64,000 nt of DNA, taken from contig CP075493.1 in the NCBI GenBank assembly GCA_021613535.1, positions 16,926,001-16,990,000 of the forward strand. The letters are read 5' to 3'. Shown here one piece after another: positions 1,776-39,784 of the stretch. Each line of letters opens with the position of its first letter. Positions within the stretch are counted from its first letter, which is position 1. This DNA is from Adineta vaga. Lineage: Eukaryota > Animalia > Rotifera. The notes beneath the pieces were generated by a model, which ran no database searches, had not been told where the DNA came from, and was given only the letters and a program-made list of their open reading frames with translations. The position numbers and the translations under genes were made by a program.

Positions 1776-4310
1776 GGCGTTAAGTTGTAATTTATATTTC
1801 AACTAACGCGATACAATCCATTAAATCGGTTTTTCCTTGGAATCAGAGAATGTACGGTTCGAAGCTACTTAATAATCAGTATAAAGTTAGGCTTATATTT
1901 TGTTATTTTCGCTTGCTTTGGCGACAAAATTGTTAGTAATCATTTTAATTACAGATTTCCTACTAGCTTCCCGGTGAGAAATGAGTTTTGTCATTTTTCT
2001 CAACGAAAGACCGCTACATTTCTTGAAGTTTGGAAGCTAATGATGGCTTTCTACAGAATCAACTAAATTTTCTACATTTGCTTGATATGATGTTTATCGC
2101 TGTAGCTGATTTTGTACACACGTAAATTATTATCACGAGTAAATCTGCACTCACTCAGTTGAAAGTTTTCTATACAGTTCAGTTTTTTGTCGGCGGCTTC
2201 TATTACTTGCAACATACTCTCGGAATTTTGTCATTTGCATAGAATGTGCTAGTCATCCGTACGCATCTTCTAGTGTTTGGTAAGCGACAGCTAAACCAGT
2301 GAAATCAGCGACCTTATGCATATATTCTGAACTGAACTGATGATTTTCAACGGCTTGTTACTCGTCGTTATCTTCGATTTCGATACTATAGTTCGGACCA
2401 AAATCACTCACATCAGAAAATTAAATAGAATTATTTGCCTCTATCTGAAAACTGCCACTATTGGACACCTTCTTTTCTATACGATAAGCAGGTTGGCTCC
2501 GATCAATGCATCTTTTTCTGAGAAATTTATTCAATAAACACTTAACTTTTCTAATACCTTCTGATATATAAATATTGATGTAATAAAACTTGAAAGAACA
2601 AACTCGAAAATGTTCGAAAATGATAGAAGTATTTTGACATGAGAAAAGAACAGAAAAGAAAAAGGAAGAGATCGGAGTGGGATGTATTAGGAAATATGAA
2701 AAAAAACAACAAATATGTACATGAATCTATAGCAATAGAATATAGACAAGTATTTTTATTCTAATTCTTCAGTATAGTATTACACTATGATGTTATAACA
2801 GTAGGAAGTCTTGAAATATATTTGATTGAGAAGCACTGCAAGATGACAGATGCCATAATGAGGATGTTTTAATATGATGATTTGGGACTAAAATACTCTT
2901 TAAATCTAATGTTTCGAACAAATGTCTTAAGATTTATCTAAAACGAGGAAAATCATTATTAAGATTAATCGGTTTCTTTGAGCCAAAGATGTATGCAAGG
3001 GCGGTGGGAAGAGATAAAAAGCAGGGAAGTTATTTTGCAAAATGAGAGGAAATTTCAAACATCGCTTGTGAAATGAGGAACCACAACGATAATATATATA
3101 TATATACATAACAAAAAGGATTATATTATTTCACTTGTCCATTAGTGTATTTAATTAAAGGTATTTTTTGAAAAAACAAAAATATCTACAAGAACAGAAA
3201 TCAGCTAAATCCTACGACCAGTCTAAAATATACTTGCTATGAAATCGAACGAAATTAAAAATATACATCCTCATCAAAAGAGATCACGTTAGAGATCTTT
3301 TCTCTGAAAATGAGAAAAATTAATACCAGAAATGGCAGGAAAATACCACTTGAATTTTTTGAAAGCAGAAGCTCCCCTGTCTTCCCCTAGTCGTGCCGTT
3401 ACTGGACCGATGTATAAAAATGGAACATACCACGAGAATTATCTCTTCGAACTCTATAAACTGATCTTCATCTCATTTAAAACGGAGATTCCCACTTGGA
3501 TATCTTTTTCGTGAGTTTATGATGCCTACAGATAGAGAACTGCGTAGATTATGCGCAGACAACAAGACAAGTGCAACAACGTTTCTTATTGTTTTCAAAT
3601 AGAATCAGCCCGAAAACGTTTTGAACGCACTATATATAGCTTTGATTCATTTTGGCTTGAGCTATATTATATTAGTAGCCATCGTTATGCCTGAATTTTC
3701 TTGAATATTAGTATCACAGCTAATGTGTTACTCGTTTTTACTGATAAAATATTTTTTGTACACCTTTCTTTTGCTTCGTTCGTAATGTGCACATGCATTC
3801 ACTTTCGAAATTTTAGTTACACTTCACTGCTTTTCCTACGTTTAAAATCAACGTGTTGTACATAATTTCTATCGATATAACGACGATTGCAGTGTTATTT
3901 ATGCATACTTGCACTTTTTTTCTCATAATTTCATAGCTTCGATGGACAAATACGTTTCACGATTTGTTTAAAAAGAATAGTTATTGCCTCTACCATCATC
4001 GAATTCAATACAATAATTTAACATGCTGAATTCCAATAGAACAGCGAATCTGGGGCGGATTTGTTTTAAACAAACATGAATAACAATCAATATTTATCCA
4101 AAACGATGATAACAGAAGAAGAAAAAAAATACTATCGAACAAATGTGATTAATGTTCGAGAACCGACACTCGCCAAATAGATGTGTGTGTAAAAGGTATC
4201 AAGCACTAATCAAAGAACCGCCAAGAAACAACAACATTAACAATTTCAAAGATCATCTGAGCAAGAATGTTCTGAAATAGCGACACTTGCAGCTTCGAAT
4301 ATTCGTTGGA

Positions 4311-4635
4311 TATATCTAGTGTCCGTATATAGAATAGGTTGAAGACGGCACTGGCTACATCCGAGTGTCCGCACATAGAATAAGTTGAAGACGGCACTGG
4401 CTCCATCCGAGTGTCCGCACATAGATTGAGTTGAAGACGGCACTGGCTACATCCGAGTGTCCGCACATAGAATAAGTTGAAGACGGCACTGGCTACATCC
4501 GAGTGTCCGCACATAGAATAAGTTGAAGACGGCACTGGCTACATCCGAGTGTCCGCACATAGAATAAGTTGAAGACGGCACTGGCTACATCCGAGTGTCC
4601 GCACATAGATTGAGTTGACGACGGCACTAGATATA
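4311..4635. repeat. 46-bp minisatellite (~6.7 units) bounded by 11-bp inverted termini tatatctagtg/cactagatata
   Basis: Unit gtgtccgcacatagaataagttgaagacggcactggctacatccga repeated from 4319. Confidence 0.9.
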
Positions 4636-7600
4636 CTTCCATTCTTCTTCCAAATTGGTCGTGTTTATTGTGCTATGTTTATCACACACAATGTAAGTAG
4701 ATAATTTTATCATTGGTTATCCAATGTACCTCTTTATAGTACTGGGAAAGTCAATGTTGGTATCTCTTACATTTTGAATGAAACTCAAGTTGACATTCGT
4801 GGATACTCCTGGTATACAGATCATTACTGGAATATCGTGTGTTGTTGTTAGTTCTTAGATGACCAACATTTAATGCACGTCGGTGGTTTATTCTGAGAGA
4901 GGGTAAGTTCGTTTTCTTTATTTTGCTCTTGACATCTTTGGAACTGTTTTTGTCTGACGAAGAGAAAAGGAAAAACGTTGGTTGGAGTCTGTTTTTCGTT
5001 GTTCTAAAAATCCCACTTCATCCATCAAATATTGTATTCAATCGCATGAGTTCCGAATGATTATCCTTATTGCTGCGGAATTAAATATTTTTTTTGTTAG
5101 GTTACATCTGTTGAAGGATACGGAAGTTCACAAGCATTGACTGTATATTGCAGGTGAATACGAGAAGTGTGTGCATCGAAGACAAACTCTATTTTTTACA
5201 AATGTGAAAATAAACGGTGCTTTGTACACCGTAGATTAAGAGCATACTGTATTTTATCATCGTCTCAGATTCACGATATACTATCTTGCAATATACTATA
5301 CCGTCAGAACAGTTTTAGTGTTCTGAAAACGCAAGTGCACTCTAAAATCGGTCAGTATGTTTGGGCACCCGCCTGTTCACATGATAGCTCTTGAAAATAG
5401 AAACCCATTGCCACTAAACTTTACTGATCAGCTTTGTCTTTTCAATATCTTGATCGAGTTCGAAGATAAGAACAATCGGTCGTAAACTTGCTAACTTACA
5501 GAAAAAAAGTTCCCTATTTCCCTATATCTTTGCCCCATGGATAAAAGATCAAATATTAAAAAAACATATTTCCGAAGAAGCTAACTGTGAAGGTTTAATC
5601 GAAGATTTTACTATATACTGCAGTTGCCCTTGGATCGCCACGGGCTATACTATGGCGATAGTCTCACAATCCCCAGTGGTATACTTTAATAGTAATTTTG
5701 AGCTTCTCTTTCATTCTTAAGAGGCGAAGGCGCTTCTGTACGATAGGAGAAAGCTAGTCACACAAATAGAAACTATGGACCCTCAGTATACTCAGACTAT
5801 CGCTAAAAAATGGAACCTGCTTTCCTGGCCGAGATACAAAGTGCACTTTACGAATCTTATCCGATCTTTTAAAGGGCTGAAGAATACTTATTTTCATCTG
5901 AATTTTGCCTATAAGTAGACTGCATAATCGTCAACTCATTCTGAAACTTTTACGCAAAAGAAACGCTTCTTTCCTAAGATATTTGGCACGTAACAAAATC
6001 AACCAAATTGTGAAAAATTCTGTATCTCGAATAGGAAACGAACTTTGGTGCCGAAAATTTCAGGGCACTGTAAAGCCTATTACTCTATCTAATAATTGCT
6101 TAAAAATTAAATTTTTTTCCCAGTATAGTCTCCAAGATCCTCTTGATCCAGAAAAATATTGATTTTTTATTGCAATCATAACAATGCCCACTCTAATGAA
6201 CATTCGGCTTCCAAGGATTAAGTACTTGAGTGCTACAGAAGTGCATACTTAGAGATTATTGGGTTTTCATAAGCTGAAGTTTCGAAGAAAACAAAATTAT
6301 ATATATTAAGGCAATAAACGAGTGGATGAAACATTTATTACTAAACACCACTTTTTCATAAACGAACTATATTTTTGTGAAGTACGATGATATATAACTT
6401 GGGTTCGACAAGCAAAAGTGGTGTTTACCTGTGAAAGACTATTTAGCTCGACGGTCATCTTTTGGGCACATTCAAATACGCAGCGAGGTGTCATCCCGCA
6501 TGCAATTCAATCTTATTTTTCTAGAGAGTGCGAGGAAATTCAGTTTCAGATCAGATTACTTTCACTTTTTGAAGTATGCACAACACTTGAATTCTTATCG
6601 GAGTTTAGCACATTTTTATGGCCTATCAAAAATTATTTTAAAAATGTTCAATAATTGGTAGCATGCTCTGGAAACTGATAGAGGTTTTGACCAAACACAT
6701 ATAACATCATTAGCAAACTATGCTGAGTATAAGTTCACCTTCTTTGCCACTAAATCCTGATTCCATCACTAGAAAGCGTGAGTTTGAATAGATGAAGGCC
6801 AATGAGACACTCAGACCCACATCCTCACTGGCCACTTGCAGTCGGAGTTATCAACATCGGATAAGCAAAACAGGACATGCGATGGCTACAGATTCAAAAT
6901 CTCTAACCTCATTTCTCTATACATACCATATGCTACTGTACTTTGACATACGAAGTTCTCAATGTGGATGTTTATCAATCATTAGCGAGTATCTTCGCTA
7001 GTATACAATGAAACTTTTGGTGAGATACTTCATTGATCTCTGACCTCGTAAGACAGATATGAGTGGAAAAAGATATTATTTTGAGGGAACTAAGTAGACC
7101 CACAGTCGATCTCTTTCATGTTGGTGCTCAATAGAGCTATTGATCAGATAAATCTCGGCAAAAAAGTTTGATAACAATCAGTTTGTATTTTCGAGAGTAT
7201 TTATGTAAACGATCGGACATCCAAATTGATTTTAGAATCGGCCTCCTTTTCAACATACGAAAATGGCTAACGATATGTTAGATAACATGGTTTCATTTCT
7301 CTTTTTCCTTCGTTGCCCTCTATAGAAAGAAAAATGAAATATTTGATTGCGCGGACTGAAGAAATTGGAAAAATGAAATCGATGTGAAGCTAGCACGCCG
7401 AGAAAAACTATCCTATTGGTCATAAACAGATCGATAAAATATTCAAAATCATAAAACCTCATTATGGAAGTTAGGGAATGGATCTTCTTTCCCTAGCAAA
7501 ACTTCATAGAGAGGGAAAATGCTCACAAAAACTTAACATACTCTTGCCCATTTAATACTCGATGGATTTCTCTCGTATCCTTCAACCATAAGCAAATATG

Positions 7601-9763
7601 TCTTTGGCCGAGATAATAAATCATTCAATGCCGAATTCAATTCTCTATCGAACATTGTTACTCACAATCATCCGACAAACTACTCAACAGAGAAAAATTC
7701 GTATATTTTTTCTTGTATAACGTGTGCAAACGATATTCAATGACTGATTAGGAAAGACACTTTTCCCTTTATAGCGTCTTCCCATCGTCAACAACACTTT
7801 CACTCGATAGATAATTATATTCTGTATCGAATGAAGCTGTTGCGATGGACGGGAAAACATCTCATGCACATCTACCTTCCATTATTTCATTCATCTTGGT
7901 ACATATACGTATGTGTTCTGATGGATGATAAGGAAGAGGGAGAAAGAGAGAGAAAGTGTCTCTTCTCAGATTATATTTCTGTCGCTGACAGCACCTTTGA
8001 TTGATAGTGAATTTGATTTTGTATCTATTGATTGTACTCCTAATCAGGGGAGAACGTCAATAGAAAAGCAGAGATATTGTATTTTGTTTATATGAGATGG
8101 GAACGTGCAATGTGAAGTAATTGAATTGAAGAAAAATTTGAGTTTTAGAAGTTTTTCCGGTAATCTGATAGTGCTCAAAGCGATGAAGAATTGAATCGCG
8201 AATCGCCTGGAGTGTCATTTATGTGCTGATCGTACTCCGTTTGACTCTCTAAATCGATTTCAGTGAATCAGTAGTCGGATCAGGAAAGATTGGAGCGTTT
8301 GGGTTTGCACCAGGAATAGTATTTGGGTCTGATATTTCTGTGAGTTATTTCAGGAAACTGATTGAAATTAATAGGATAATGGTAGCTAAGAATTTTTGTT
8401 GGTATTCTATGGATTCGTTATGGTGAAATATGGATGCATTGCCATTGATCGATTGTTTTAGTAGATTCTGATTGATCATCGTGCTAGTTTCACATCGATC
8501 AAAAAGCATCAATATTTCAGTTATATCATAAGTTCGGCTGACGTAGTGTACAAGTTTTTCACTCTGTTCGCTTTCTTTTTGGCCACAAAATTGTATTCCC
8601 TCAAATATCCTGTCATATAGAGTAAAGCTTTCTTACAATTTAATCAATAATAAAAAAAATGAAGACGATTATTGATTTGTATCATTCTCATAGACAGGAT
8701 TTTTCTCTTTTTCTATCATTGTACTTTTTCAACAAACATACAGGCATACTTTAATACATACACTTTCTCTCTAGATGCAGTCAAAAATGAAGGTTATATG
8801 CAGCTCAACACTCACCCACACCCTCAACCAACATACGTATTTGTACGCAAGACACGTCTCTAGTTTTATGTACGTGTGCAACAGTGGTTTCGTATTATTT
8901 ATATTTTGAAGAATAAAGATAAATATGAGTGTGAGTGTGAGTGTGAGAACGTGGATTGCGAGTGCTCAATTACAGGTAAGTGCACTTCAGTCTGCGACTG
9001 ATGGCTCCACGAAAAAGTAGAAACATATATTTCTACTTTTAGTTGTAAAAGACATAGAGCACAGATTCCTTTAATGTTCTCTACCCATTCTACTTCTTTT
9101 CCTTCCTTTAATCCCATTATTCCTTTGAATCCTTTTGGTTCCGTTCTTCCCATTACTTCTTTTAGTCCGTTTAGCCAGTTAATAGACAAGCATCACCTTC
9201 ACATATGGAACTCTTCAGAGGGAAACACCGAAGGACGGGGCCGTCAATCGTCCCACTCACTTTTTGTCGTCGGAATCCTTTAGAAACTATATACACCGAT
9301 AGATTTCGATTCGGAGAACACTCCACAACGATTGTTGTTGTTTCCAACATACATATTTTAGCGCAAATTAGGTCTCACTTATATCTAGTGTTTCAGTGCA
9401 ATTTTCATAATTTTCCATATTCGATACTCGGCTTATGCATGCATATTTTGAAGGAATACTACTTGCACACTCACACAAAATTCAAAGAACAATGCCACCA
9501 TACACAATAATTCAGATTTGTCAGATTCTAAAGTAATACAAGTAAGTAACAGAGGTAGTTTCTCGAATTACCACCTCTTCATAGTCTCATAGGATGATTG
9601 ATAACCTAGCATTTGCACATTATCTCGAGAAAACAAAATACCTATTTCTGAAATTTCTACTGGAGTTACATCTCATATAGATCTTCAAACTCTGAAGAGG
9701 ATGTCACAGTCGACGAGGTTGGCCATTTGACATATAGTTGATTGTACTGTCTTTTAGACCATA

Positions 9764-10474
9764 CTAGCGGAGACACCCGCTGCAAAGAGGACGCAATTTA
9801 CGTTTTTCATCTACAACAGTGCTTTTCTCACCAAACAACGAACCTCTCCGTTGGTGTTTACCCGTCGTGTATCAGAAGATCCTCACACCCTCCTTTCCTG
9901 TCCTACCTTAGCTACTGTAATCCTTCAGGTCGCCATTCAGCGTGAGTTACCTGTCTTTCACATGTCTTTCTCCTCCGTACTGAAACCCTGCTATATCCCT
10001 TTTCGCGTCATGCGTCAGGTCTTTTTTTCAGAACTTTTCGCATCTCTTCATCAGTGCTTTCCTACTGGTCTTGCTTCGCTATACATACGACATACAGCTA
10101 TGTTCCTTTTAAATCTACACCCACTGTCCCGCTGCAACTACCACCTCTCGGTAGATCTACCTATTCTCAGACGCTCGCTGCAAGTCATTCTCTAGTTTAT
10201 AACCTTCGCTTCGACTCCACACAGGTAAAGTAGTCATTTCACTCCAGATTCAGTTTTTTCTGAGAACCCAAACCAGGCATTGCAGTTGTCCAGCTTGGAT
10301 GCAGACATCAACTACCCTCCCCTCATCCCTCGGTGACCATTCTAACCCCATGTCGACCTTTCTATGGACCTAGAGAAGCATTGTGGAAAGTCTGGGAATG
10401 TTATCTATTACAGGGACTGAATGCATCGCGAACAGACAGACAGACAAACAAACTTTCTTCTTTATATATAAAGA
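9764..10474 (-). mobile_element. Non-autonomous Helitron (711 bp)
   Basis: On the minus strand: A|TCtttatatataaag 5' end, (TGTC)n microsatellite, and a 3' hairpin agcgg-gtgtct-ccgct overlapping the terminal CTAG|T. Inserted at an AT site exactly where the 510-bp arm match stops. Confidence 0.8.
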
Positions 10475-10678
10475 TTTTGAAATGCTGCAATCCTACTGAT
10501 CAGTTTCATATATTGTCTGTAGCAAGCACAGGATTCATTGTTTTCGGAACAAAGTAGACGTCGACCTTCCCCTGGATGTAGAGACTATTTCTGGAAAGTT
10601 TCATTGCATTTGCTTGAACAGCCTTCAAATGCATAGCGAACATACAGAACAAGTAACGCTCGTTGGGCCGACTCACTG

Positions 10679-11292
10679 AACCCTCGACTGTGGAGGACGG
10701 GTATTTTCAGCTTGACTCAATAGTGAGATGAATTGATCTGGAAACTTAACCCTTTCTTGCCTTTGGCTAGACTTGACAGTTTGAAAGAGCAATTCGCATA
10801 GCAACATTAGCCTTCTGACCACCCATACTCGCTCGAAAAGTTTGAACCAGATCCGTCAAACGTCCATTTTAAGTATTCAACGAACACTAAAAACAATACT
10901 TTTATGATAAAAATAGGATTCAAATTATTGGTTTTAAGTCCACAATTGATAGGTTTTAAGTTGATATGAAATCGGTCTTTAAATGTCTCTTACTTCAAAA
11001 GAATCAAATTTTTATAAAGTGGACGCTATAGCGCCCAAAGGGCAGGAAAGGGTCAAAATACGAGAAATGGCTCTCATGTCATTTTTGAAATATGTATTAA
11101 CTCTCGAAAACAGAATATTCACTTTTTTTCGTTAAATCAATTTCACCCAACACCCATCTCTATACCCACATCCACGATTTCGGACGCCCTTTAACTGATT
11201 TCTTTTGTTGCCTTTGACCTTGACACAAACCCACAGACAAACAAACAAACAAACAAACTATTCTTTTTCATATGACTCTCCTTACAGTCGAC
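10679..11292 (-). mobile_element. DINE-1/HINE-like non-autonomous Helentron derivative
   Basis: One end reads tcgactgtaagga(g)..gtcatat followed by a (GTTT)n microsatellite. The other end has the inverted subterminal copy inside an accc...gggt hairpin. The same terminus occurs at 48557 and 51434. Confidence 0.55.
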
Positions 11293-11747
11293 GAACTATT
11301 AGACACATGTATTCAATATACACAAGGCATCGTGAACCATTTCCGATGAAGGCACGAAGAAACGAATGAGGCAGAAGTGCCGAATCTTCTGTGTGCGCTT
11401 ACCCTCGGCCGTGAAGGAAATTTCTCAAAAATTGGCTTACGTTAAGCAGGCAAATTCTTCGCCTCCAGTTCAACGTGAGCGAAAATCGCATAGAGTGAGT
11501 GAGACTGATGGTGTGAATGCAGGTGAGGGTAGCATATTTACATGTCAATCCCACCCATACCCTCAAAAAAACTTTTTTCCTAAACATAGCTGGATTCGTA
11601 ATGATTTATCCAATTCATACTCATAATTTTAATCAAGATTTTGTGAATGTATTCTTAGCAATAAAACACTTTCGAGTTCAGAAATTGCTAAAAAATAAGC
11701 AATGTGAGTTCCATACTTTAGCTCGAAAGGAGCTGCGCTCAGAAGCT

Positions 11748-12076
11748 TTTTGACAAGTTTTGACAGATTTCGGCCTACTTTGTCATACAAGTCCCATAAA
11801 CTAATAGCGTTCATTTCGACTTAGTTTTCATTACTAATCAAATCTGACTCAATTTTATCTTGCTTTCCACCATTCAATTCGAGTTTTATTCTAAATACGT
11901 TTCAGGCTGAGTCTTGAGGGGCAGCAAGTGGCAGTTTTTCTGCGAAAAACAAATATCGATAGCTGCACTTGTAACATAGTCAGATCGCCTCAGTTTTTAC
12001 TCTGATTTCATATACGCTATTAATTTAGAGGACTTGTATGACAAAGCAGGTCGAAATCTGTCCAAACTTGTTAAAA
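11748..12076. mobile_element. Small MITE with ~63 bp imperfect TIRs
   Basis: 11748-11810 is inverted relative to 12013-12076. Confidence 0.65.
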
Positions 12077-12683
12077 AAATATAGGAAATATGGTATAAAA
12101 AGTAGTACGATCAACTATATGTCAAGTAACTAAACCCGTAGACTATGACATCCTCTTCAGAGTTTGAAGATCTATATGAGATGTAACTCCAGTAGAAATT
12201 TCAGAAATAGGTATTTTGTTTTCTCGAGATAATATGCAAATGCTAGGTTATCAATCATCCTATGAGACTATGAAGAGGTGGTAATTCGAGAAACTACCTC
12301 TGTTACTTACTTGTATTACTTTAGAATCTGACAAATCTGAATTATTGTGTATGGTGGCATTGTTCTTTGAATTTTGTGTGAGTGTGCAAGTAGTATTCCT
12401 TCAAAATATGCATGCATAAGCCGAGTATCGAATATGGAAAATTATGAAAATTGCACTGAAACACTAGATATAAGTGAGACCTAATTTGCGCTAAAATATG
12501 TATGTTGGAAACAACAAAAATCATTGTGGAGTGTTCTCCGAATCGAAATCTATCGATGTATATAGTTTGTAAAGGATTCCGACGACAAAAAGTGAGTGGG
12601 CCGATTTACGGCCTTAAAGGTCTCTGTGCTTTGTTTTTGAACGTCATGAAATAGACGATAAAAGCGAACAAATTGACTGAGAG

Positions 12684-13486
12684 ATGTCTTTCCAATTGGA
12701 AGATCTCAAAGTTAATGAGTCATCTGGTATGATGAAAATTGAAGAAAAATCTTCCGAAATCTTTGAAGTAATTGATTCAAACTTAAGAAAGATTCTTGAT
12801 CACTTTCTTCGTGTACTTGATTTTAACAATATTAGAGAGACCAATCAAATTTTAAGTCAAGCTCGAATAATTGATGATTTAATTCAAAAATCACCATTTA
12901 TAACTATGCAAAATAAAGATCAATTCGTTCGGTTAGAATCAAGAGCAAAATATTCTACTCCAGCATTTGATTCAGTTTATGCTTGAACTGGTACGACTGC
13001 AGATGGGAATCGTTAATATAGTTCTCTTTCGATATACAATATTGGATCTGAAAAACTAATCCATTCGATCAGATTGTTGGCACTTGATGCAATGATGACG
13101 AATATTTCCGAACACATTCCAAATCATTGAACTATTCATTTGAAGAGCAGTTGAAAAGAATTGCTAAACATCCAACATGGGATAGAGAGGTTTAAATTCA
13201 TGCGCTTCCTATGGTTCTATCTTATCCTATCTATTCGTATATTGTTTAACAGCAATCCGAAAATAGACAATACATTTTATCGAATATTAGTCTACAAGAA
13301 TTAATCGATCGATTTAATAAAGGAACAGTAGGCGATCATTTAATATATATAGGATACAAATCCGACATAAATAAACTGGGACTTCGTGTTCATTACAACG
13401 GTACACATTATGATGCTCTTTTACCTTTACGAGATAATCCTCAACAGTTTGTACCGCACTTTGATATAGTTAACAAAAGTTTATAA
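12684..13486 (+). pseudogene. OTU-like cysteine protease pseudogene
   Basis: Reading through the stop gives YA*TGTTADGNR*YSSLSIYNIGSEKLIHSIRLLA (decayed GDGNCLY motif, catalytic Cys to Arg). HYNGTHYDALLP appears near 13391. Multiple stops and frameshifts. Confidence 0.7.
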
Positions 13487-14383
13487 GATTAAAAGATAAT
13501 AAAAGCTTTAAATAGAGATATAGAAAATTGGTAACAAAACAATTTTTTCGTTGATGCAAGTAATTAACTCTTCGGAACTAACTTCTCGCTGCGTCCTACG
13601 GGACAAAAGGAGGGCACCCGCAGAGCCTAACGGGTAGTTCTTTAGTGCGCTCCAGGATGAATTTGTACGGCATCTTGAAAAAGAATCAAACGTAGTTGCT
13701 GACAGACTGATCTCGGTCAACTGTCTTAAAGAATCAGTCCGGAATGTCAATACACATGAACTTTTCATAACTTTGAGAAGAATAACATTGCGAAAATCGG
13801 AAACGCAGCATAATTATCTCGTTGGTGATCCTCATTTTCTAGTTCCAAATAAGTTCAACCAACTCTCAAAAGCATTGATACGAATTCATTGGAAAAAACT
13901 GATGGTATTAACTACACCAGCACTGGTGTCAATATCCGACCCCAGATTTCACCCCACCCTCAAGAATCTTTTGATTGATGAATTTTCCCAATAAGAAAAA
14001 TTTTCTGAAGACGTTTATAATCGAATAAAAAACTATTTGTCACAAATAAAGATTTATCAGAAGTTGACTGATCAGAATTTGCATCTTTATTCTCTTTATG
14101 AACAAAAGCAGGATCCCATCACATCGCGATGATACATGTATATTGAAAGATCTATATGAACATTTCTATACAGTTGTTATAGAATCTCAATTTTGAGATA
14201 ACTTTTACTTGACGAAATCTAACCGTCCAGTTCAACATACTCAATTCATCAGACTCGATTGTAATGACACATATGTCAGCACTATTACAAAAACTCATAG
14301 AACAGATTTTTTTCTTTTTGAAACAATTTTTTAAAGAAGTCGAAGATATAAAAATATAAGGTGTAAAATGTCTCAGTCTTTTT

Positions 14384-17043: not shown

Positions 17044-17111
17044 TTTTTTATTAATAAATTAATAAAGACAAAAAAAAATCTTAGTTCAGATATAGTTCAG
17101 ATATTTATGAG

Positions 17112-23979: not shown

Positions 23980-24098
23980 ACTGTGATTTATTAATAAAAT
24001 TTTCCAAACATTAATTTTTTTTTCAAGAAAAATAAAAGCGAATTTTAATTTTTTTTTCCAATTATTTTTATAGATATATATAAAGCATTCTTCTCATC

Positions 24099-24617: not shown

Positions 24618-24722
24618 ATAAATAATCACAATATTATAAACTTCATTTTTTTTATAAATACAGAATAATTGATGATTTATTTAAAAAAATAATAAAAAGA
24701 TAAAAAGTCATAAGACAAGTCT

Positions 24723-27540: not shown

Positions 27541-27576
27541 AAAGGACGGGAGCCTTTAAGGCCATAAATCGGCCCA

Positions 27577-28802
27577 CCCAGGTCCACCAATCCCATAATC
27601 GGATCCTATTAACTTTGTCCGATAATATCACATATCAAGGAACCGATCGAATCCTAGTAACGTGAACCCATGATTTCTAACGATTTCCACCATACACTCC
27701 GACAAAATCCAACGAATTCCGAAATAAATCTTAAAATGAATATTATGAACAACCCAAAATACGTATTAAATGAGCGTGAAACACTATTCAAACTATGTCG
27801 CGCTGTTTATGAATATATATTACCTAACTCCCAGTAAAATTCATATTTTTAAACCCTTCACATTTTAAGCAGACCGTATTTTTCTTATTTCATACCCCAT
27901 AACTCCATCAGAAAGTATCATAAGCAAAAATCTACGGCATCCACCACCTTGACAACTACAGTGACAGCAACAGCGATCGTTATACAAAAACTACACATAG
28001 CACAACAACAGATATTCTCTTTAGTCGTATTCGATAATTAGAAATCCCCACCAAAAACATCTGCGTAGCTAATATGGCTGCATGCTTCGTGCTTTCTTCA
28101 AAGCAACACTACCTACTGACGTACAAATACTTCTTATGAAACTAATTACCACTGTCAAACATTCCCAACAACTTAGAAAGACATGCCCAAAAGAAACACA
28201 AACATAAACTCACATTTCTACCTATATTTCCCGGAAAATGCTTAGTTTCCACCTACACACTCGGTTAATTCCCATCAAAACAACTTTGACATTGACTTTC
28301 TTTCCCACATCTCATCTCATACGATTCCGACACCCACAAAAATAATTCACATTCCTCCATCTCTTCTTTAAGCCACTATACAAACTACATAATGAGCTTT
28401 TCATCCTAAATCAGCCCAAACGAAATATACTCTAATCGAGCATATACGAAATATAAGTGACGGATTTTAAATCTAAAAGAAATCCACAAATATCCTACGA
28501 GACAGATATGAAATGAATAACTGAAGGATTTTCAATCCGAGAAAACCCCAAAGAAATTATGTATTTGCAGATTTTTTAATTCATCGGATGTTATCGGAAG
28601 TGTATTCAATTCCGTCGCCAGGAATCCTATAGAATTCTGTCGGATCATCAGTTCCGATCGGATCTGACATCGGATTGGTTGACCTCCCATGTCCCCAAAA
28701 TCACAATGATTTTAACGATTAATCACGATTAAATGGTCAAAATTGCGATAAATCTCACAATTAATAGCTCAAACCATGGCGATTTTGAGAAGATGTGCTG
28801 GG
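27577..28802. mobile_element. Compound CCC..GGG-ended (CACTA/EnSpm-like) non-autonomous insertion with CA target duplication
   Basis: ggccCA[cccag...ctggg]CActcact versus the empty site ggcccactcact in arm L (reverse complement of 12591-12602). Internal TIR aggtc.accaatcc near 27580 and 28672-28685. Confidence 0.65.
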
Positions 28803-30108
28803 CACTCACTTTTCGTCGGCGGAAACCTTTACAAACTATATACATCGATAGATTTCGATTCGGAGAACACTCCACAATGATTTTTGTTGTTTCCAACATA
28901 CATATTTTAGCGCAAATTAGGTCTCACTTATATCTAGTGTTTCAGTGCAATTTTCATAATTTTCCATATTCGATACTCGGCTTATGCATGCATATTTTGA
29001 AGGAATACTACTTGCACACTCACACAAAATTCAAAGAACAATGCCACCATACACAATAATTCAGATTTGTCAGATTCTAAAGTAATACAAGTAAGTAACA
29101 GAGGTAGTTTCTCGAATTACCACCTCTTCATAGTCTCATAGGATGATTGATAACCTAGCATTTGCATATTATCTCGAGAAAACAAAATACCTATTTCTGA
29201 AATTTCTACTGGAGTTACATCTCATATAGATCTTCAAACTCTGAAGAGGATGTCATAGTCTACGGGTTTAGTTACTTGACATATAGTTGATCGTACTACT
29301 TTTTATACCATATTTCCTATATTTTTTTAACAAGTTTGGACAGATTTCGACCTGCTTTGTCATACAAGTCCTCTAAATTAATAGCGTATATGAAATCAGA
29401 GTAAAAACTGAGGCGATCTGACTATGTTACAAGTGCAGCTATCGATATTTGTTTTTCGCAGAAAAACTGCCACTTGCTGCCCCTCAAGACTCAGCCTGAA
29501 ACGTATTTAGAATAAAACTCGAATTGAATGGTGGAAAGCAAGATAAAATTGAGTCAGATTTGATTAGTAATGAAAACTAAGTCGAAATGAACGCTATTAG
29601 TTTATGGGACTTGTATGACAAAGTAGGCCGAAATGTGTCAAAACTTGTCAAAAAGCTTCTGAGCGCAGCTCCTTTCGAGCTAAAGTATGGAACTCACATT
29701 GCTTATTTTTTAGCAATTTCTGAACTCGAAAGTGTTTTATTGCTAAGAATACATCCACAAAATCTTGATTAAAATTATGAGTATGAATTGGATAAATCAT
29801 TACGAATCCAGCTATGTTTAGGAAAAAAGTTTTTTTGAGGGTATGGGTGGGATTGACATGTAAATATGCTACCCTCACCTGCATTCACACCATCAGTCTC
29901 ACTCACTCTATGCGATTTTCGCTCACGTTGAACTGGAGGCGAAGAATTTGCCTGCTTAACGTAAGCCAATTTTTGAGAAATTTCCTTCACGGCCGAGGGT
30001 AAGCGCACACAGAAGATTCGGCACTTCTGCCTCACTCGTTTCTTCGTGCCTTCATCGGAAATGGTTCACGATGCCTTGTGTATATTGAATACATGTGTCT
30101 AATAGTTC

Positions 30109-30710
30109 GTCGACTGTAAGGAGGGTCATATAAAAAAGAATAGTTTGTTTGTCTGTGGGTTTGTGTCAAGGTCAAAGGCAACAAAAGAAATCAGTTAAAG
30201 GGCGTCCGAAATCGTGGATGTGGGTATAGAGATGGGTGTTGGGTGAAATTGATTTAACGAAAAAAAGTGAATATTCTGTTTTCGAGAGTTAATACATATT
30301 TCAAAAATGACATGAGAGCCATTTCTCGTATTTTGACCCTTTCCTGCCCTTTGGGCGCTATAGCGTCCACTTTATAAAAATTTGATTCTTTTGAAGTAAG
30401 AGACATTTAAAGACCGATTTCATATCAACTTAAAACCTATCAATTGTGGACTTAAAACCAATAATTTGAATCCTATTTTTATCATAAAAGTATTGTTTTT
30501 AGTGTTCGTTGAATACTTAAAATGGACGTTTGACGGATCTGGTTCAAACTTTTCGAGCGAGTATGGGTGGTCAGAAGGCTAATGTTGCTATGCGAATTGC
30601 TCTTTCAAACTGTCAAGTCTAGCCAAAGGCAAGAAAGGGTTAAGTTTCCAGATCAATTCATCTCACTATTGAGTCAAGCTGAAAATACCCGTCCTCCACA
30701 GTCGAGGGTT
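30109..30710 (+). mobile_element. HINE-like Helentron derivative (mirror copy)
   Basis: Mirror of 10679-11292. Confidence 0.55.
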
Positions 30711-30914
30711 CAGTGAGTCGGCCCAACGAGCGTTACTTGTTCTGTATGTTCGCTATGCATTTGAAGGCTGTTCAAGCAAATGCAATGAAACTTTCCAGAA
30801 ATAGTCTCTACATCCAGGGGAAGGTCGACGTCTACTTTGTTCCGAAAACAATGAATCCTGTGCTTGCTACAGACAATATATGAAACTGATCAGTAGGATT
30901 GCAGCATTTCAAAA

Positions 30915-31625
30915 TCTTTATATATAAAGAAGAAAGTTTGTTTGTCTGTCTGTCTGTTCGCGATGCATTCAGTCCCTGTAATAGATAACATTCCCAGACT
31001 TTCCACAATGCTTCTCTAGGTCCATAGAAAGGTCGACATGGGGTTAGAATGGTCACCGAGGGATGAGGGGAGGGTAGTTGATGTCTGCATCCAAGCTGGA
31101 CAACTGCAATGCCTGGTTTGGGTTCTCAGAAAAAACTGAATCTGGAGTGAAATGACTACTTTACCTGTGTGGAGTCGAAGCGAAGGTTATAAACTAGAGA
31201 ATGACTTGCAGCGAGCGTCTGAGAATAGGTAGATCTACCGAGAGGTGGTAGTTGCAGCGGGACAGTGGGTGTAGATTTAAAAGGAACATAGCTGTATGTC
31301 GTATGTATAGCGAAGCAAGACCAGTAGGAAAGCACTGATGAAGAGATGCGAAAAGTTCTGAAAAAAAGACCTGACGCATGACGCGAAAAGGGATATAGCA
31401 GGGTTTCAGTACGGAGGAGAAAGACATGTGAAAGACAGGTAACTCACGCTGAATGGCGACCTGAAGGATTACAGTAGCTAAGGTAGGACAGGAAAGGAGG
31501 GTGTGAGGATCTTCTGATACACGACGGGTAAACACCAACGGAGAGGTTCGTTGTTTGGTGAGAAAAGCACTGTTGTAGATGAAAAACGTAAATTGCGTCC
31601 TCTTTGCAGCGGGTGTCTCCGCTAG
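30915..31625 (+). mobile_element. Non-autonomous Helitron (mirror copy)
   Basis: A|TC ... hairpin-CTAG|T; mirror of 9764-10474. Confidence 0.8.
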
Positions 31626-34600
31626 TATGGTCTAAAAGACAGTACAATCAACTATATGTCAAATGGCCAACCTCGTCGACTGTGACATCCTCTTCAGAGT
31701 TTGAAGATCTATATGAGATGTAACTCCAGTAGAAATTTCAGAAATAGGTATTTTGTTTTCTCGAGATAATGTGCAAATGCTAGGTTATCAATCATCCTAT
31801 GAGACTATGAAGAGGTGGTAATTCGAGAAACTACCTCTGTTACTTACTTGTATTACTTTAGAATCTGACAAATCTGAATTATTGTGTATGGTGGCATTGT
31901 TCTTTGAATTTTGTGTGAGTGTGCAAGTAGTATTCCTTCAAAATATGCATGCATAAGCCGAGTATCGAATATGGAAAATTATGAAAATTGCACTGAAACA
32001 CTAGATATAAGTGAGACCTAATTTGCGCTAAAATATGTATGTTGGAAACAACAACAATCGTTGTGGAGTGTTCTCCGAATCGAAATCTATCGGTGTATAT
32101 AGTTTCTAAAGGATTCCGACGACAAAAAGTGAGTGGGACGATTGACGGCCCCGTCCTTCGGTGTTTCCCTCTGAAGAGTTCCATATGTGAAGGTGATGTT
32201 TGTCTATTAACTGGCTAAACGGACTAAAAGAAGTAATGGGAAGAACGGAACCAAAAGGATTCAAAGGAATAATGGGATTAAAGGAAGGAAAAGAAGTAGA
32301 ATGGGTAGAGAACATTAAAGGAATCTGTGCTCTATGTCTTTTACAACTAAAAGTAGAAATATATGTTTCTACTTTTTCGTGGAGCCATCAGTCGCAGACT
32401 GAAGTGCACTTACCTGTAATTGAGCACTCGCAATCCACTTTCTCACACTCACACTCACACTCATATTTATCTTTATTCTTCAAAATATAAATAATACGAA
32501 ACCACTGTTGCACACGTACATAAAACTAGAGACGTGTCTTGCGTACAAATACGTATGTTGGTTGAGGGTGTGGGTGAGTGTTGAGCTGCATATAACCTTC
32601 ATTTTTGACTGCATCTAGAGAGAAAGTGTATGTATTAAAGTATGCCTGTATGTTTGTTGAAAAAGTACAATGATAGAAAAAGAGAAAAATCCTGTGTATG
32701 AGAATGATACAAATCAATAATCGTCTTCATTTTTTTTATTATTGATTAAATTGTAAGAAAGCTTTACTCTATATGACAGGATATTTGAGGGAATACAATT
32801 TTGTGGCCAAAAAGAAAGCGAACAGAGTGAAAAACTTGTACACTACGTCAGCCGAACTTATGATATAACTGAAATATTGATGCTTTTTGATCGATGTGAA
32901 ACTAGCACGATGATCAATCAGAATCTACTAAAACAATCGATCAATGGCAATGCATCCATATTTCACCATAACGAATCCATAGAATACCAACAAAAATTCT
33001 TAGCTACCATTATCCTATTAATTTCAATCATTTTCTTGGAATAACTCACAGAAATATCAGACCCAAATACTATTCCTGGTGCAAACCCAAACGCTCCAAT
33101 CTTTCCTGATCCGACTACTGATTCACTGAAATCGATTTAGAGAGTCAAACGGAGTACGATCAGCACATAAATGACACTCCAGGCGATTCGCGATTCAATT
33201 CTTCATCGCTTTGAGCACTATCAGATTACCGGAAAAACTTCTAAAACTCAAATTTTTCTTCAATTCAATTACTTCACATTGCACGTTCCCATCTCATATA
33301 AACAAAATACAATATCTCTGCTTTTCTATTGACGTTCTCCCCTGATTAGGAGTACAATCAATAGATACAAAATCAAATTCACTATCAATCAAAGGTGCTG
33401 TCAGCGACAGAAATATAATCTGAGAAGAGACACTTTCTCTCTCTTTCTCCCTCTTCCTTATCATCCATCAGAACACATACGTATATGTACCAAGATGAAT
33501 GAAATAATGGAAGGTAGATGTGCATGAGATGTTTTCCCGTCCATCGCAACAGCTTCATTCGATACAGAATATAATTATCTATCGAGTGAAAGTGTTGTTG
33601 ACGATGGGAAGACGCTATAAAGGGAAAAGTGTCTTTCCTAATCAGTCATTGAATATCGTTTGTACACGTTATACAAGAAAAAATATACGAATTTTTCTCT
33701 GTTGAGTAGTTTGTCGGATGATTGTGAGTAACAATGTTCGATAGAGAATTGAATTCGGCATTGAATGATTTATTATCTCGGCCAAAGACATATTTGCTTA
33801 TGGTTGAAGGATACGAGAGAAATCCATCGAGTATTAAATGGGCAAGAGTATGTTAAGTTTTTGTGAGCATTTTCCCTCTCTATGAAGTTTTTCTAGGGAA
33901 AGAAGATCCATTCCCTAACTTCCATAATGAGGTTTTATGATTTTGAATATTTTATCGATCTGTTTATGACCAATAGGATAGTTTTTCTCGGCGTGCTAGC
34001 TTCACATCGATTTCATTTTTCCAATTTCTTCAGTCCGCGCAATCAAATATTTCATTTTTCTTTCTATAGAGGGCAACGAAGGAAAAAGAGAAATGAAACC
34101 ATGTTATCTAACATATCGTTAGTCATTTTCGTATGTTGAAAAGGAGGCCGATTCTAAAATCAATTTGGATGTCCGATCGTTTACATAAATACTCTCGAAA
34201 ATACAAACTGATTGTTATCAAACTTTTTTGCCGAGATTTATCTGATCAATAGCTCTATTGAGCACCAACATGAAAGAGATCGACTGTGGGTCTACTTAGT
34301 TCCCTCAAAATAATATCTTTTTCCACTCATATCTGTCTTACGAGGTCAGAGATCAATGAAGTATCTCACCAAAAGTTTCATTGTATACTAGCGAAGATAC
34401 TCGCTAATGATTGATAAACATCCACATTGAGAACTTCGTATGTCAAAGTACAGTAGCATATGGTATGTATAGAGAAATGAGGTTAGAGATTTTGAATCTG
34501 TAGCCATCGCATGTCCTGTTTTGCTTATCCGATGTTGATAACTCCGACTGCAAGTGGCCAGTGAGGATGTGGGTCTGAGTGTCTCATTGGCCTTCATCTA

Positions 34601-36753
34601 TTCAAACTCACGCTTTCTAGTGATGGAATCAGGATTTAGTGGCAAAGAAGGTGAACTTATACTCAGCATAGTTTGCTAATGATGTTATATGTGTTTGGTC
34701 AAAACCTCTATCAGTTTCCAGAGCATGCTACCAATTATTGAACATTTTTAAAATAATTTTTGATAGGCCATAAAAATGTGCTAAACTCCGATAAGAATTC
34801 AAGTGTTGTGCATACTTCAAAAAGTGAAAGTAATCTGATCTGAAACTGAATTTCCTCGCACTCTCTAGAAAAATAAGATTGAATTGCATGCGGGATGACA
34901 CCTCGCTGCGTATTTGAATGTGCCCAAAAGATGACCGTCGAGCTAAATAGTCTTTCACAGGTAAACACCACTTTTGCTTGTCGAACCCAAGTTATATATC
35001 ATCGTACTTCACAAAAATATAGTTCGTTTATGAAAAAGTGGTGTTTAGTAATAAATGTTTCATCCACTCGTTTATTACCTTAATATAAATGATCTTGTTT
35101 TTTTCGAAACTTCAACTTACGAAGACTTGAGAATCTCTAATTATGCACCTCTGTAGCACCCAAGTACTTAATCCTTGGGTGCCGAATGTTCATTGGAGTG
35201 GACATTGTTATGATTGCAATAAGAAATCAATATTTTTCTGGTTCAAAAGGATCTTGAAGACAATTCTGGGATCAAATTTTAATTCTTAAGCAATTATTAG
35301 ATAGAGTAATAGGCTTTACAGTGCCCTGAAATTTTCGGCACCAAAGTTCGTTTCCTATTCGAGATACAGAATTTTTCACAATTTGGTTGATTTTGTTACG
35401 TGCCAAATATCTTAGGAAAGAAGCGTTTCTTTTGCGTAAAAGTTTCAGAATGAGTTGACGATTATGCAGTCTACTTATAGGCAAAATTCAGATGAAAATA
35501 AGTATTCTTCAGCCCTTTAAAAGATCGGATAAGATTCGTAAAGTGCACTTTGTATCTCGGCCAGAAAAGCAGGTTCCATTTTTTAGCGATAGTCTGAGTA
35601 TACTGAGGGTCCATAGTTTCTATTTTTGTGACTAGCTTTCTCCTATCGTACAGAAGCGCCTTCGCCTCTTAAGAATGAAAGGGAAGCTCAAAATTACTAT
35701 TAAAGTATACCACTGGGGATTGTGAGACTATCGCCATAGTATAGCCTTTGGCGATCCAAGGGCAACTGCAGTATATAGTAAAATCTTCGATTAAACCTTC
35801 ACAGTTAGCTTCTTCGGAAATATGTTTTTTTAATATTTGATCTTTTATCCATGGGGCAAAGATATAGGGAAATAGGGAACTTTTTTTCTGTAAGTTAGCA
35901 AGTTTACGACCGATTGTTCTTATCTTCGAACTCGATCAAGATATTGAAAAGACAAAGCTGATCAGTAAAGTTTAGTGGCAATGGGTTTCTATTTTCAAGA
36001 GCTATCATGTGAACAGGCGGGTGCCCAAATATACTGACCGATTTTAGAGTGCACTTGCGTTTTCAGAACACTAAAACTGTTCTGACGGTATAGTATATTG
36101 CAAGATAGTATATCGTGAATCTGAGACGATGATAAAATACAGTATGCTCTTAATCTACGGTGTACAAAGCACCGTTTATTTTCACATTTGTAAAAAATAG
36201 AGTTTGTCTTCGATGCACACACTTCTCGTATTCACCTGCAATATACAGTCAATGCTTGTGAACTTCCGTATCCTTCAACAGATGTAACCTAACAAAAAAA
36301 ATATTTAATTCCGCAGCAATAAGGATAATCATTCGGAACTCATGCGATTGGATACAATATTTGATGGATGAAGTGGGATTTTTAGAACAACGAAAAACAG
36401 ACTCCAACCAACGTTTTTCCTTTTCTCTTCGTCAGACAAAAACAATTCCAAAGATGTCAAGAGCAAAATAAAGAAAACGAACTTACCCTCTCTCAGAATA
36501 AACCACCGACGTGCATTAAATGTTGGTCATCTAAGAACTAACAACAACACACGATATTCCAGTAATGATCTGTATACCAGGAGTATCCACGAATGTCAAC
36601 TTAAGTTTCATTCAAAATGTAAGAGATACCAACATTGACTTTCCCAGTACTATAAAGAGGTACATTGGATAACCAATGATAAAATTATCTACTTACATTG
36701 TGTGTGATAAACATAGCACAATAAACACGACCAATTTGGAAGAAGAATGGAAG

Positions 36754-36940
36754 TATATCTAGTGCCGTCGTCAACTCAATCTATGTGCGGACACTCGGAT
36801 GTAGCCAGTGCCGTCTTCAACTTATTCTATGTGCGGACACTCGGATGTAGCCAGTGCCGTCTTCAACTTATTCTATGTGCGGACACTCGGATGTAGCCAG
36901 TGCCGTCTTCAACCTATTCTATATACGGACACTAGATATA
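36754..36940. repeat. 46-bp minisatellite (~3.7 units), mirror copy
   Basis: Three units fewer than 4311-4635. Confidence 0.9.
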
Positions 36941-39178
36941 TCCAACGAATATTCGAAGCTGCAAGTGTTGCTATTTCAGAACATTCTTGCTCAGATGATC
37001 TTTGAAATTGTTAATGTTGTTGTTTCTTGGCGGTTGTTTGATTAGTGCTTGATACCTTTTACACACACATCTATTTGGCGAGTGTCGGTTCTCGAACATT
37101 AATCACATTTGTTCGATAGTATTTTTTTTCTTCTTCTGTTATCATCGTTTTGGATAAATATTGATTGTTATTCATGTTTGTTTAAAACAAATCCGCCCCA
37201 GATTCGCTGTTCTATTGGAATTCAGCATGTTAAATTATTGTATTGAATTCGATGATGGTAGAGGCAATAACTATTCTTTTTAAACAAATCGTGAAACGTA
37301 TTTGTCCATCGAAGCTATGAAATTATGAGAAAAAAAGTGCAAGTATGCATAAATAACACTGCAATCGTCGTTATATCGATAGAAATTATGTACAACACGT
37401 TGATTTTAAACGTAGGAAAAGCAGTGAAGTGTAACTAAAATTTCGAAAGTGAATGCATGTGCACATTACGAACGAAGCAAAAGAAAGGTGTACAAAAAAT
37501 ATTTTATCAGTAAAAACGAGTAACACATTAGCTGTGATACTAATATTCAAGAAAATTCAGGCTTAACGATGGCTACTAATATAATATAGCTCAAGCCAAA
37601 ATGAATCAAAGCTATATATAGTGCGTTCAAAACGTTTTCGGGCTGATTCTATTTGAAAACAATAAGAAACGTTGTTGCACTTGTCTTGTTGTCTGCGCAT
37701 AATCTACGCAGTTCTCTATCTGTAGGCATCATAAACTCACGAAAAAGATATCCAAGTGGGAATCTCAGTTTTAAATGAGATGAAGATCAGTTTATAGAGT
37801 TCGAAGAGATAATTCTCGTGGTATGTTCCATTTTTATACATCGGTCCAGTAACGGCACGACTAGGGGAAGACAGGGGAGCTTCTGCTTTCAAAAAATTCA
37901 AGTGGTATTTTCCTGCCATTTCTGGTATTAATTTCTCTCATTTTCAGAGAAAAGATCTCTAACGTGATCTCTTTTGATGAGGATGTATATTTTTAATTTC
38001 GTTCGATTTCATAGCAAGTATATTTTAGACTGGTCGTAGGATTTAGCTGATTTCTGTTCTTGTAGATATTTTTGTTTTTTCAAAAAATACCTTTAATTAA
38101 ATACACTAATGGACAAGTGAAATAATATAATCCTTTTTGTTATGTATATATATATATATTATCGTTGTGGTTCCTCATTTCACAAGCGATGTTTGAAATT
38201 TCCTCTCATTTTGCAAAATAACTTCCCTGCTTTTTATCTCTTCCCACCGCCCTTGCATACATCTTTGGCTCAAAGAAACCGATTAATCTTAATAATGATT
38301 TTCCTCGTTTTAGATAAATCTTAAGACATTTGTTCGAAACATTAGATTTAAAGAGTATTTTGGTCCCAAATCATCATATTAAAACATCCTCATTGTGGCA
38401 TCTGTCATCTTGCAGTGCTTCTCAATCAAATATATTTCAAGACTTCCTACTGTTATAACATCATAGTGTAATACTATACTGAAGAATTAGAATAAAAATA
38501 CTTGTCTATATTCTATTGCTATAGATTCATGTACATATTTGTTGTTTTTTTTCATATTTCCTAATACATCCCACTCCGATCTCTTCCTTTTTCTTTTCTG
38601 TTCTTTTCTCATGTCAAAATACTTCTATCATTTTCGAACATTTTCGAGTTTGTTCTTTCAAGTTTTATTACATCAATATTTATATATCAGAAGGTATTAG
38701 AAAAGTTAAGTGTTTATTGTATAAATTTCTCAGAAAAAGATGCATTGATCGGAGCCAACCTGCTTATCGTATAGAAAAGAAGGTGTCCAATAGTGGCAGT
38801 TTTCAGTTAGAGGCAAATAATTCTATTTAATTTTCTGATGTGAGTGATTTTGGTCCGAACTATAGTATCAAAATCGAAGATAACGACGAGTAACAAGCCG
38901 TTGAAAATCATCAGTTCAGTTCAGAATATATGCATAAGGTCGCTGATTTCACTCGTTTAGCTGTCGCTTACCAAACACTAGAAGATGCGTACGGATGACT
39001 AGCACATTCTATGCAAATGACAAAATTCCGAGAGTATGTTGCAAGTAATAGAAGCCGCCGACAAAAAACTGAACTGTATAGAAAACTTTCAACTGAGTGA
39101 GTGCAGATTTACTCGTGATATTAATTTACGTGTGTACGACATCAGCTACAGCGATAAACATCATCTCAAGCAAATATA

Positions 39179-39784
39179 GAGGGTGTGGGTGGGGTGTGAC
39201 GATTTTTTTCTCTTAGGAACCCTCTTCAAAAACTACATCATTCGATAGAGAATTAAATTCTGCAACCTACACAACCTTTTCGAAGACCACCACAAGTTTA
39301 TAGGGGAATCCTGACAAAAAATACTCGAATATGGTGCTAACTTTATCTACGTTATTGTTTGCGTCTTTTACTTTGATACAAATAAACTTAATTGAACTCG
39401 TAACGCTATATTTTATGTTAATCGATTACTAACATCTTTCTATCATATTTGATTAGAAAGAGATATAAGAAGAAATATTTCGTTACAGACAAAATATTAG
39501 TTTTGGTTCTAAACAACAAGAAACATACAATACCTTTTACATTTATGTAAAATAATATACCAATGTATACGAAAAGCGCGATATGTTTTCGAAAATGTAA
39601 AAAAAGCTAATATAAAATGGGCTCTTATGCTTCAGGAACGACATGATTGAGTAAGAAAAGTAGTAATATCCCTGTTTTCAAGCTAAACTGAAATCTATAA
39701 ACACTATTCTAACAATTTATCTTCATAATAACTAAAGTTTCATAAATGGAGAAAAAGAGCATTGTTTGAGTATTTGTTAATTTA
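39179..39784 (+). repeat. ~605 bp direct repeat, copy 1 (left part of a TIR element extending to ~40190)
   Basis: Matches 49209-49815 at offset ~10031. A diverged inverted copy lies at ~40060-40175 and a partial direct copy at 40198-40380. Confidence 0.9.

Follow-up and report, generated by a model that had tools for sequence, protein, structure and literature searches.

An inverted duplication with a gene-bearing single-copy spacer in a subtelomere of the bdelloid rotifer Adineta vaga is consistent with repair of a broken chromosome end

A 37-kb structure on chromosome 1 of the bdelloid rotifer Adineta vaga consists of two non-coding arms of about 10.4 kb, inverted with respect to each other, and a single-copy spacer between them that carries genes. 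The stretch of DNA analysed, here called the window, comprises 64,000 nucleotides of the AV20 assembly (chromosome 1, positions 16,926,001 to 16,990,000), and all coordinates below are positions within it. The window belongs to the right subtelomere and lies some 1.16 Mb short of that chromosome end, in a zone rich in interstitial telomeric tracts. From the sequence, we lean toward reading the structure as an inverted duplication around a single-copy spacer that arose by repair and whose free end was capped and then rejoined within a dynamic subtelomere. An initial annotation of this DNA had listed a repair-generated inverted duplication among several options, and that option is now supported by three features: one ancestral inner joint, one new inner joint and a capped outer end. 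The locus would then be a structural scar and not a device, and the only activity expected of it would be ordinary homologous recombination between the arms, that is, conversion and possibly inversion of the spacer. Rearrangements of this type are known already; what is most likely new is a bdelloid example.

The left arm (2071-12598, plus strand, 10,528 bp) is the reverse complement of the right arm (28803-39180, minus strand, 10,378 bp). Both a seed-and-extend scan and self-BLAST recover the pair as three collinear pieces at 99% identity, which confirms to the base the two near-identical inverted arms that the initial annotation had delimited. Arm identity is 99.1% by BLAST, with gaps counted, and 99.3% in a global alignment, where 71 substitutions occur among 10,390 aligned bases and the only indels are one of 138 bp and one of 12 bp. 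The spacer (12599-28802) measures 16,204 bp, and there are no Ns in the window. Two inverted copies with single-copy DNA between them are the arrangement that defines fold-back products and human inverted duplications with terminal deletion (inv-dup-del). We take the left arm as the original copy, its inner end being continuous with the spacer by way of a repeat-family member, and the right arm as the derived inverted copy. A search of the genome (six pieces, 100.8 Mb) found the arm's outer 7.2 kb in these two copies only. To the geometry as first described, four features are added here, namely a nested 525-bp inverted repeat, a telomere-like tract at 39181, a repeat family that extends across the left inner joint, and an uneven distribution of divergence between the arms.

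The two inner joints are of different age. The inner 3.4 kb of the arm (9239-12613) is itself a small inverted structure, in which the segment 12089-12613 has an older, nested inverted copy at 9239-9763 (plus strand, 525 bp, 96% identical), with counterparts in the right arm at 31626-32150 and 28803-29312. Between the two nested copies sits a dispersed repeat (9761-10475) that is present in more than 40 copies. The copy at 12089-12613 is part of a longer family member, 11855-12632, and single copies of this family occur on chromosomes 4 and 2 at 75-79% identity. Both of these copies align across position 12598 and continue up to 12632-12633, whereas in the right arm the same alignments end at 28802/28803. 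Because the family copies cross 12598 but stop at 28802/28803, the ancestral inner joint is the left one; the right one is new and truncates the family member by about 34 bp. Ancestral continuity between the proximal copy and the spacer, together with a new junction between the spacer and the inverted copy, is what a fold-back rearrangement would leave.

The new joint, where the right end of the spacer meets the inverted arm (28802-28803), is blunt and has 0 bp of inverted microhomology. It maps 15 bp away from where the nested 525-bp repeat ends, and the 15 nucleotides concerned form a mini-palindrome (12599-12613, plus strand) with a 5-bp stem and a 5-nt loop, for which DNA folding gives -6.4 kcal/mol and a z score of -2.66. 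This mini-palindrome spans exactly the interval from the end of the large repeat (12598) to the end of the nested repeat (12613). Since there is no inverted microhomology and only this 15-nt hairpin nearby, blunt end-joining of two broken chromatids would fit the new joint better than strict fold-back priming. A third copy of the 525-bp repeat was also considered as the mediator of a homology-driven fold-back and was rejected, as the inner repeat of the right arm copies that of the left arm throughout, and its edge differences are, at two of the three positions, older states that the chromosome 4 copy has as well.

At its outer end the right arm passes directly into a degenerate TGTGGG-like tract of 18 nt (39181-39198, plus strand). 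TGTGGG is the telomere repeat of this genome (see also PMC8494291), and the G strand of the tract points toward the chromosome's right end, the polarity expected where an end faces the right telomere. As in a fold-back product, the inverted copy is joined at its far end to telomere-like repeats. Immediately beyond lies the tip unit, of about 170 bp, of a dispersed family with 60 matches (39199-39353, plus strand), and the last bases of the arm (39179-39180) overlap the start of the family consensus by 2 nt (GA). At eight other places the tip unit is preceded by telomeric hexamer tracts of differing length, and these in turn by unrelated DNA. Variable telomeric tracts following unrelated DNA are the pattern expected of a capped free end, not of a cut-and-paste insertion. 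Nor can the tip unit be a simple insertion into a longer arm, because homology to the left flank never resumes beyond it, in the window or in the genome. Further seams of the same orientation occur at 40198 and 49211, and a second seam block (49209-49815, plus strand, 607 bp) opens with telomeric hexamers and is 98.5% identical to 39179-39784. The left outer end, 2070/2071, bears no junction mark, and no repeat family was found to cross it. Inspection of the outer ends revealed no target-site duplication, as the initial annotation had stated. Telomere-like matches at 8815, 28327 and 32563, within the arms and the spacer, were examined as candidate telomeric seams and set aside, being single imperfect matches in ordinary sequence.

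Taken together, the joints suggest the following scheme. A chromosome break would have left a free end at the right edge of the spacer, at 28802, and an inverted copy of the region starting at 12598 would have been attached to this end in head-to-head fashion and without homology. That copy could have come from the sister chromatid, from the homologue, or from synthesis after fold-back. Position 12598 adjoins the small, putatively hairpin-forming palindrome that also marks the end of the older nested 525-bp inverted duplication. The inverted copy would extend 10.4 kb toward the centromere and end at the point matching 2071, either by breakage of a dicentric or because copying stopped there. 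The free end may then have been capped with a few telomeric hexamers and the telomere-associated repeat tip of about 170 nt, and the capped end would later have been continued by other DNA. Afterwards the arms would have exchanged sequence or kept allelic differences, which would give the patchy divergence seen today. We infer the order of these events, along with the source of the copy (sister chromatid versus homologue), the dicentric intermediate and the enzymes responsible for capping.

Divergence between the arms is far from uniform. It amounts to 0.68% overall and to 0.34% once a diverged patch, the edges and an identical tract are excluded. The patch (6104-6312, plus strand; right-arm counterpart 35077-35285) is sharply bounded and contains 29 substitutions in 209 bp (14%) and no indels, and no third copy of it exists in the assembly. 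Five differences fall in the outermost 60 bp of the arms and three in the innermost 25 bp (P = 5e-5 in each case), while a tract of 2,079 bp is free of any difference (P = 0.003). At the inner-edge mismatches, the right arm has the base of the chromosome 4 copy at two of the three positions and the left arm agrees with its own nested partner, the latter match pointing to a short conversion inside the left arm. Beyond the inner edge, the uneven divergence fits arm-to-arm conversion, a second arm that is allelic in origin, or double assembly of one allelic piece. The initial annotation had offered a conversion-maintained cassette as another option; the pattern agrees with its conversion component, although it agrees equally with an allelic second arm. 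Of the two indels, the larger reflects a 46-bp tandem repeat (4318-4628, plus strand) that has 6.8 copies in the left arm and 3.8 copies in the right (36761-36933), making this 138-bp length difference the sole large indel between the arms. The 12-bp indel is a microsatellite at 11237. The arms also differ in composition from their surroundings, with a GC content of 0.365 versus 0.32-0.33 in the spacer and flanks.

Among the competing explanations, an assembly artefact deserves to be heard at length, even though we regard it as rather unlikely. Only one arm would then be real, and the second would be an uncollapsed allelic version of it, placed inverted 16 kb away in the haploid AV20 assembly. 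There is precedent in the palindromes of the AV13 assembly, for which faulty scaffolding of phased haplotypes was held responsible, and it is in subtelomeres that uncollapsed haplotigs are concentrated (PMC8494291). Scaffolding cannot create sequence, however, and the window is free of Ns. Around the two derived joints (28802/28803 and 39180/39181) no DpnII (GATC) or HinfI (GANTC) site was seen. We further reason that NextDenovo, run on 125x Oxford Nanopore (ONT) reads, would not usually leave a 10-kb contig free, and that purge_dups, which the assembly authors ran (PMC8494291), is built to remove such contigs. The divergence of the arms, with its low overall level, identical 2-kb tract and 14% patch, does resemble a mosaic allelic pair, and the mismatch clusters at both arm ends could be consensus errors at the ends of a contig. 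Nevertheless, the right-arm bases at two of the three inner-edge mismatches are shared with the chromosome 4 copy, so that they do not look like random consensus errors. Without the second arm, the right end of the spacer would adjoin the telomere-tip seam directly, in itself a typical seam; yet the arm shares the 2-nt overlap with the tip consensus at 39179-39180, and the haplotypes would still have to differ in structure at both ends of the arm. A staggered-break inversion is quite improbable in our estimation. Here a seam-capped arm would have stood beside a spacer facing the opposite way, and cuts 10.4 kb apart, together with a cut at 2070, would have inverted the spacer and duplicated the arm. 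This matches the geometry of inverted copies flanking a segment and makes the same prediction of an ancestral left and a new right inner joint, so that it and the break-repair reading differ only in which outer joint is new; interstitial telomeric tracts are, in addition, plausible fragile sites. It demands, though, that one nick hit the boundary between arm and seam exactly, a stagger of 10.4 kb is long for the model, and 2070/2071 shows no sign of being a new joint. Synteny with A. ricciae, which covers 19256-26928 only, cannot orient the spacer relative to the flanks.

Two further explanations grant the structure a continuing activity, and one makes it mobile. That AV20 holds a genuine recombination-active palindrome, with a second arm derived from the homologue and hence truly allelic, made when breaks were mis-repaired, and with arms that are homogenised and a 16-kb block that flips, strikes us as unlikely. 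The stronger version, an old palindrome held near-identical by conversion between its arms and flipped by crossover as a maintained invertible cassette, is more doubtful again. The 2,079-bp identical tract and the excess of differences at the edges would suit such a history, but local conversion from the nested repeat accounts for the cluster at the inner edge. The 14% patch looks like a relic without a donor elsewhere in the assembly, and the higher GC content of the arms is what GC-biased conversion would give. Set against these, the genes lie in the spacer and not in the arms, so that conversion protects no gene; no arms are seen within 10 kb at the A. ricciae locus; and nothing points to selection for flipping. 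A giant non-autonomous transposon with 10-kb terminal inverted repeats and host genes as cargo, an option that the initial annotation had also raised, is close to excluded. Only the geometry and surroundings rich in transposable elements (TEs) speak for it: there is no target-site duplication, no transposase or reverse transcriptase turned up in the spacer ORFs and arm stretches scanned, and the inner arm ends are not equivalent, one being continuous with a family member and the other truncated. A search of the genome for the same arms around other cargo, as the annotation had suggested, gave no further copy of the outer 7.2 kb, and the central part of the spacer matches, in collinear order, an ordinary A. 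ricciae locus with no arms within 10 kb.

Several observations weigh against the break-repair reading itself. At the human fold-back junctions that have been sequenced, homologous repeats, microhomology of 2-8 bp or inserted sequence were present (PMC3907307), whereas the microhomology expected of a fold-back is missing from the right inner joint. The excess of mismatches at the arm ends and the 14% patch suit an allelic piece that was assembled twice. With about 1.16 Mb of chromosome distal to the supposed capped end, the reading has to include joining or capture at a later stage. A check next to three longer tip copies gave no reverse transcriptase, and a retroelement origin of the tip family is only putative. 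Finally, five other seams, each examined over 40 kb (200 kb in all), yielded no inverted repeat of at least 400 bp, which implies that a large palindrome is not a routine outcome of such seams.

Breakage-fusion-bridge products of yeast and tumours are a related fold-back type. Closer comparison is possible with the human inv-dup-del cases (Hermetz et al. 2014, PMC3907307), which involve telomere addition or capture and likewise consist of inverted copies around a single-copy spacer, 1.9-70 kb long in human and 16.2 kb here. In both there is one new junction, and the far end is joined to telomere repeats; half of the human inversion-telomere junctions have 1-4 bp of microhomology (PMC3907307), compared with the overlap of 2 nt in A. 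vaga. The duplicated segment, on the other hand, is 10.4 kb of non-genic DNA here and megabases in human, and the new A. vaga junction is without inverted microhomology. The A. vaga cap is a short telomeric tract plus a tip of about 170 bp, is now internal, and lies 1.16 Mb from the chromosome end. A terminal deletion, part of the human rearrangement, would be hypothetical at the A. vaga locus.

For the capped end, the relevant parallel is found in bdelloids themselves. Deletion breakpoints in A. vaga carry telomeric repeats and Athena fragments and have been read as neotelomeres (PMC13564844), and Athena copies have short telomeric repeats at their 3' ends (PMC5537684). Capping by neotelomeres and Athena (Gladyshev and Arkhipova 2007, via PMC5537684; PMC13564844) resembles the seam at 39181 in that unique DNA gives way to a short run of TGTGGG-like repeats and these to one end of a telomere-associated repeat, with the polarity of a chromosome end. 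The resemblance has limits, since the capped end in the window is the end of an inverted duplicate and only the tip of about 170 bp is present, the retroelement origin of which is putative. A full-text literature search combining 'bdelloid' with 'inverted duplication' returned no bdelloid study by title or abstract. As regards recombining palindromes, the inverted repeats of plastids, the isomers of herpesviruses and the palindromes of Y chromosomes share with this locus the layout of a single-copy region between inverted repeats as well as signs of exchange between arms. Unlike them, the A. vaga arms are non-coding and their identity is a patchy 99.3%, as opposed to above 99.9%; isomers at the A. 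vaga locus are hypothetical, and nothing suggests selective maintenance.

In the 2013 A. vaga genome, palindromes reportedly served as a headline argument for ameiotic evolution, and they are said to have been defined by collinear genes. Those of the 2013 draft were withdrawn in 2021 as artefacts, when the AV20 authors retrieved none of them in AV20 and found subtelomeres to hold most of the structural diversity and uncollapsed haplotigs (PMC8494291). The structure described here resembles the AV13 palindromes in species and in the near-allelic divergence between inverted copies on one scaffold, but its arms are gene-free and the assembly is a long-read assembly without gaps. Given that the arms are without genes, gene-synteny screens would probably miss the locus. 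If verified, a 37-kb palindrome with gene-free arms would mean that such structures exist in A. vaga and escape screens of this kind, and its joints would tie the palindrome to the way in which rotifers handle broken ends, that is, by blunt joining, capping with telomere repeats and re-joining. The 29-difference patch and the 138-bp difference in repeat length tag the arms and could be used to measure rates of conversion or inversion after desiccation or radiation. Should the palindrome prove recombination-active, it would report naturally on intrachromosomal recombination in an animal without sex. Should it prove an artefact, it would point to a kind of error that persists in a reference in wide use.

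The description of the arms as non-coding, made in the initial annotation, is borne out by two results. The longest stop-free stretch in the arms is 145 aa, within the range of composition-matched shuffles (mean 107 aa, maximum 150 aa), and none of the ten longest such stretches has a Pfam match above chance. The same annotation had counted eight intact genes in the spacer and no mobility enzyme. Its gene count is about right. Four of the eight have Pfam domains, namely two NHL-repeat genes (15903-17040, plus strand; 24726-25734, minus strand), an OPT transporter gene (17115-19277, minus strand) and an ADP-ribosyltransferase-TPR (ART-TPR) gene (19746-21635, plus strand). The remainder are small open reading frames (ORFs) of unknown type without a Pfam domain, at 14387-14935 and 22532-23137 on the minus strand and at 23335-23976 and 24084-24614 on the plus strand. 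The OPT gene has at least one short GT..AG intron, and what appears to be an in-frame stop falls inside it. The ART-TPR ORF is a 100% match to the A. vaga protein I4U23_005482. As to mobility enzymes, no transposase, integrase or reverse transcriptase domain was detected in the spacer ORFs scanned, and the absence of Pfam matches from the ten longest arm stretches agrees with the earlier statement. Each end of the spacer is occupied by a dispersed TE-family copy of about 1 kb, one at 12635-13664 (family of at least eight copies) and the other, from a different family, at 27598-28685 (at least 20 copies); identity is 74-87% in both families, and neither has a recognisable coding domain. Exact-protein look-ups with ORFs at or near the joints and with the spacer genes found no independent assembly contig on record.

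Comparison with A. ricciae concerns the middle of the spacer. The segment 19256-26928 is collinear with positions 9823-16100 of the A. ricciae locus L001 at about 85% nucleotide identity over genes and intergenic DNA, and the ART-TPR proteins of the two species are 91% identical. Collinearity breaks inside the spacer on both sides, the flanks of the locus are not collinear, and the arms were not seen within 10 kb of the collinear A. ricciae locus, the shared block being 19256-26928 only. A neighbouring gene in A. ricciae has an 84% match 335 kb distal, but it comes from a multi-copy family. A large 335-kb inversion was considered on the strength of this match and dropped, given that the gene is multi-copy and its surroundings do not match. 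The OPT gene is missing from the collinear A. ricciae locus, and a hAT/ZBED gene stands in its place. OPT oligopeptide transporters are mainly a fungal, plant and bacterial family, and the A. vaga gene may be a domesticated foreign gene. The two NHL-repeat genes, which are opposite in orientation, share about 72% nucleotide identity over 385 bp, which suggests that an inverted gene pair of older date lies within the single-copy DNA.

Beyond the right arm, the direct 607-bp repeats (39179-39784 and 49209-49815) sit 10 kb apart. Past the first 172 bp or so, the 607-bp block is similar to 3' flanking sequence of an ART/NHL gene on C5 (L016). The interval 39179-49815 was evaluated as a long terminal repeat (LTR) retrotransposon and rejected, because what its 607-bp direct repeats enclose is an FG-GAP gene together with a tandem array of 396-bp units, and it lacks a reverse transcriptase. 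Within 43994-46226 and 47290-48462, the array (about 5.6 units, identity about 86%) stands immediately upstream of an ORF that contains six FG-GAP/VCBS-type repeats, and array and ORF may be one large repeat-containing gene between two telomere-tip seams. No Rfam match, either to a hammerhead in the seam or to another known RNA, was obtained in the window. The tip unit of about 170 bp also occurs as a head-to-head pair at 40055-40376. On the other side of the structure, the left flank contains two palindromic elements that resemble miniature inverted-repeat transposable elements (790-1121 and 1123-1718), the first of which belongs to a family with dozens of copies matching in both orientations.

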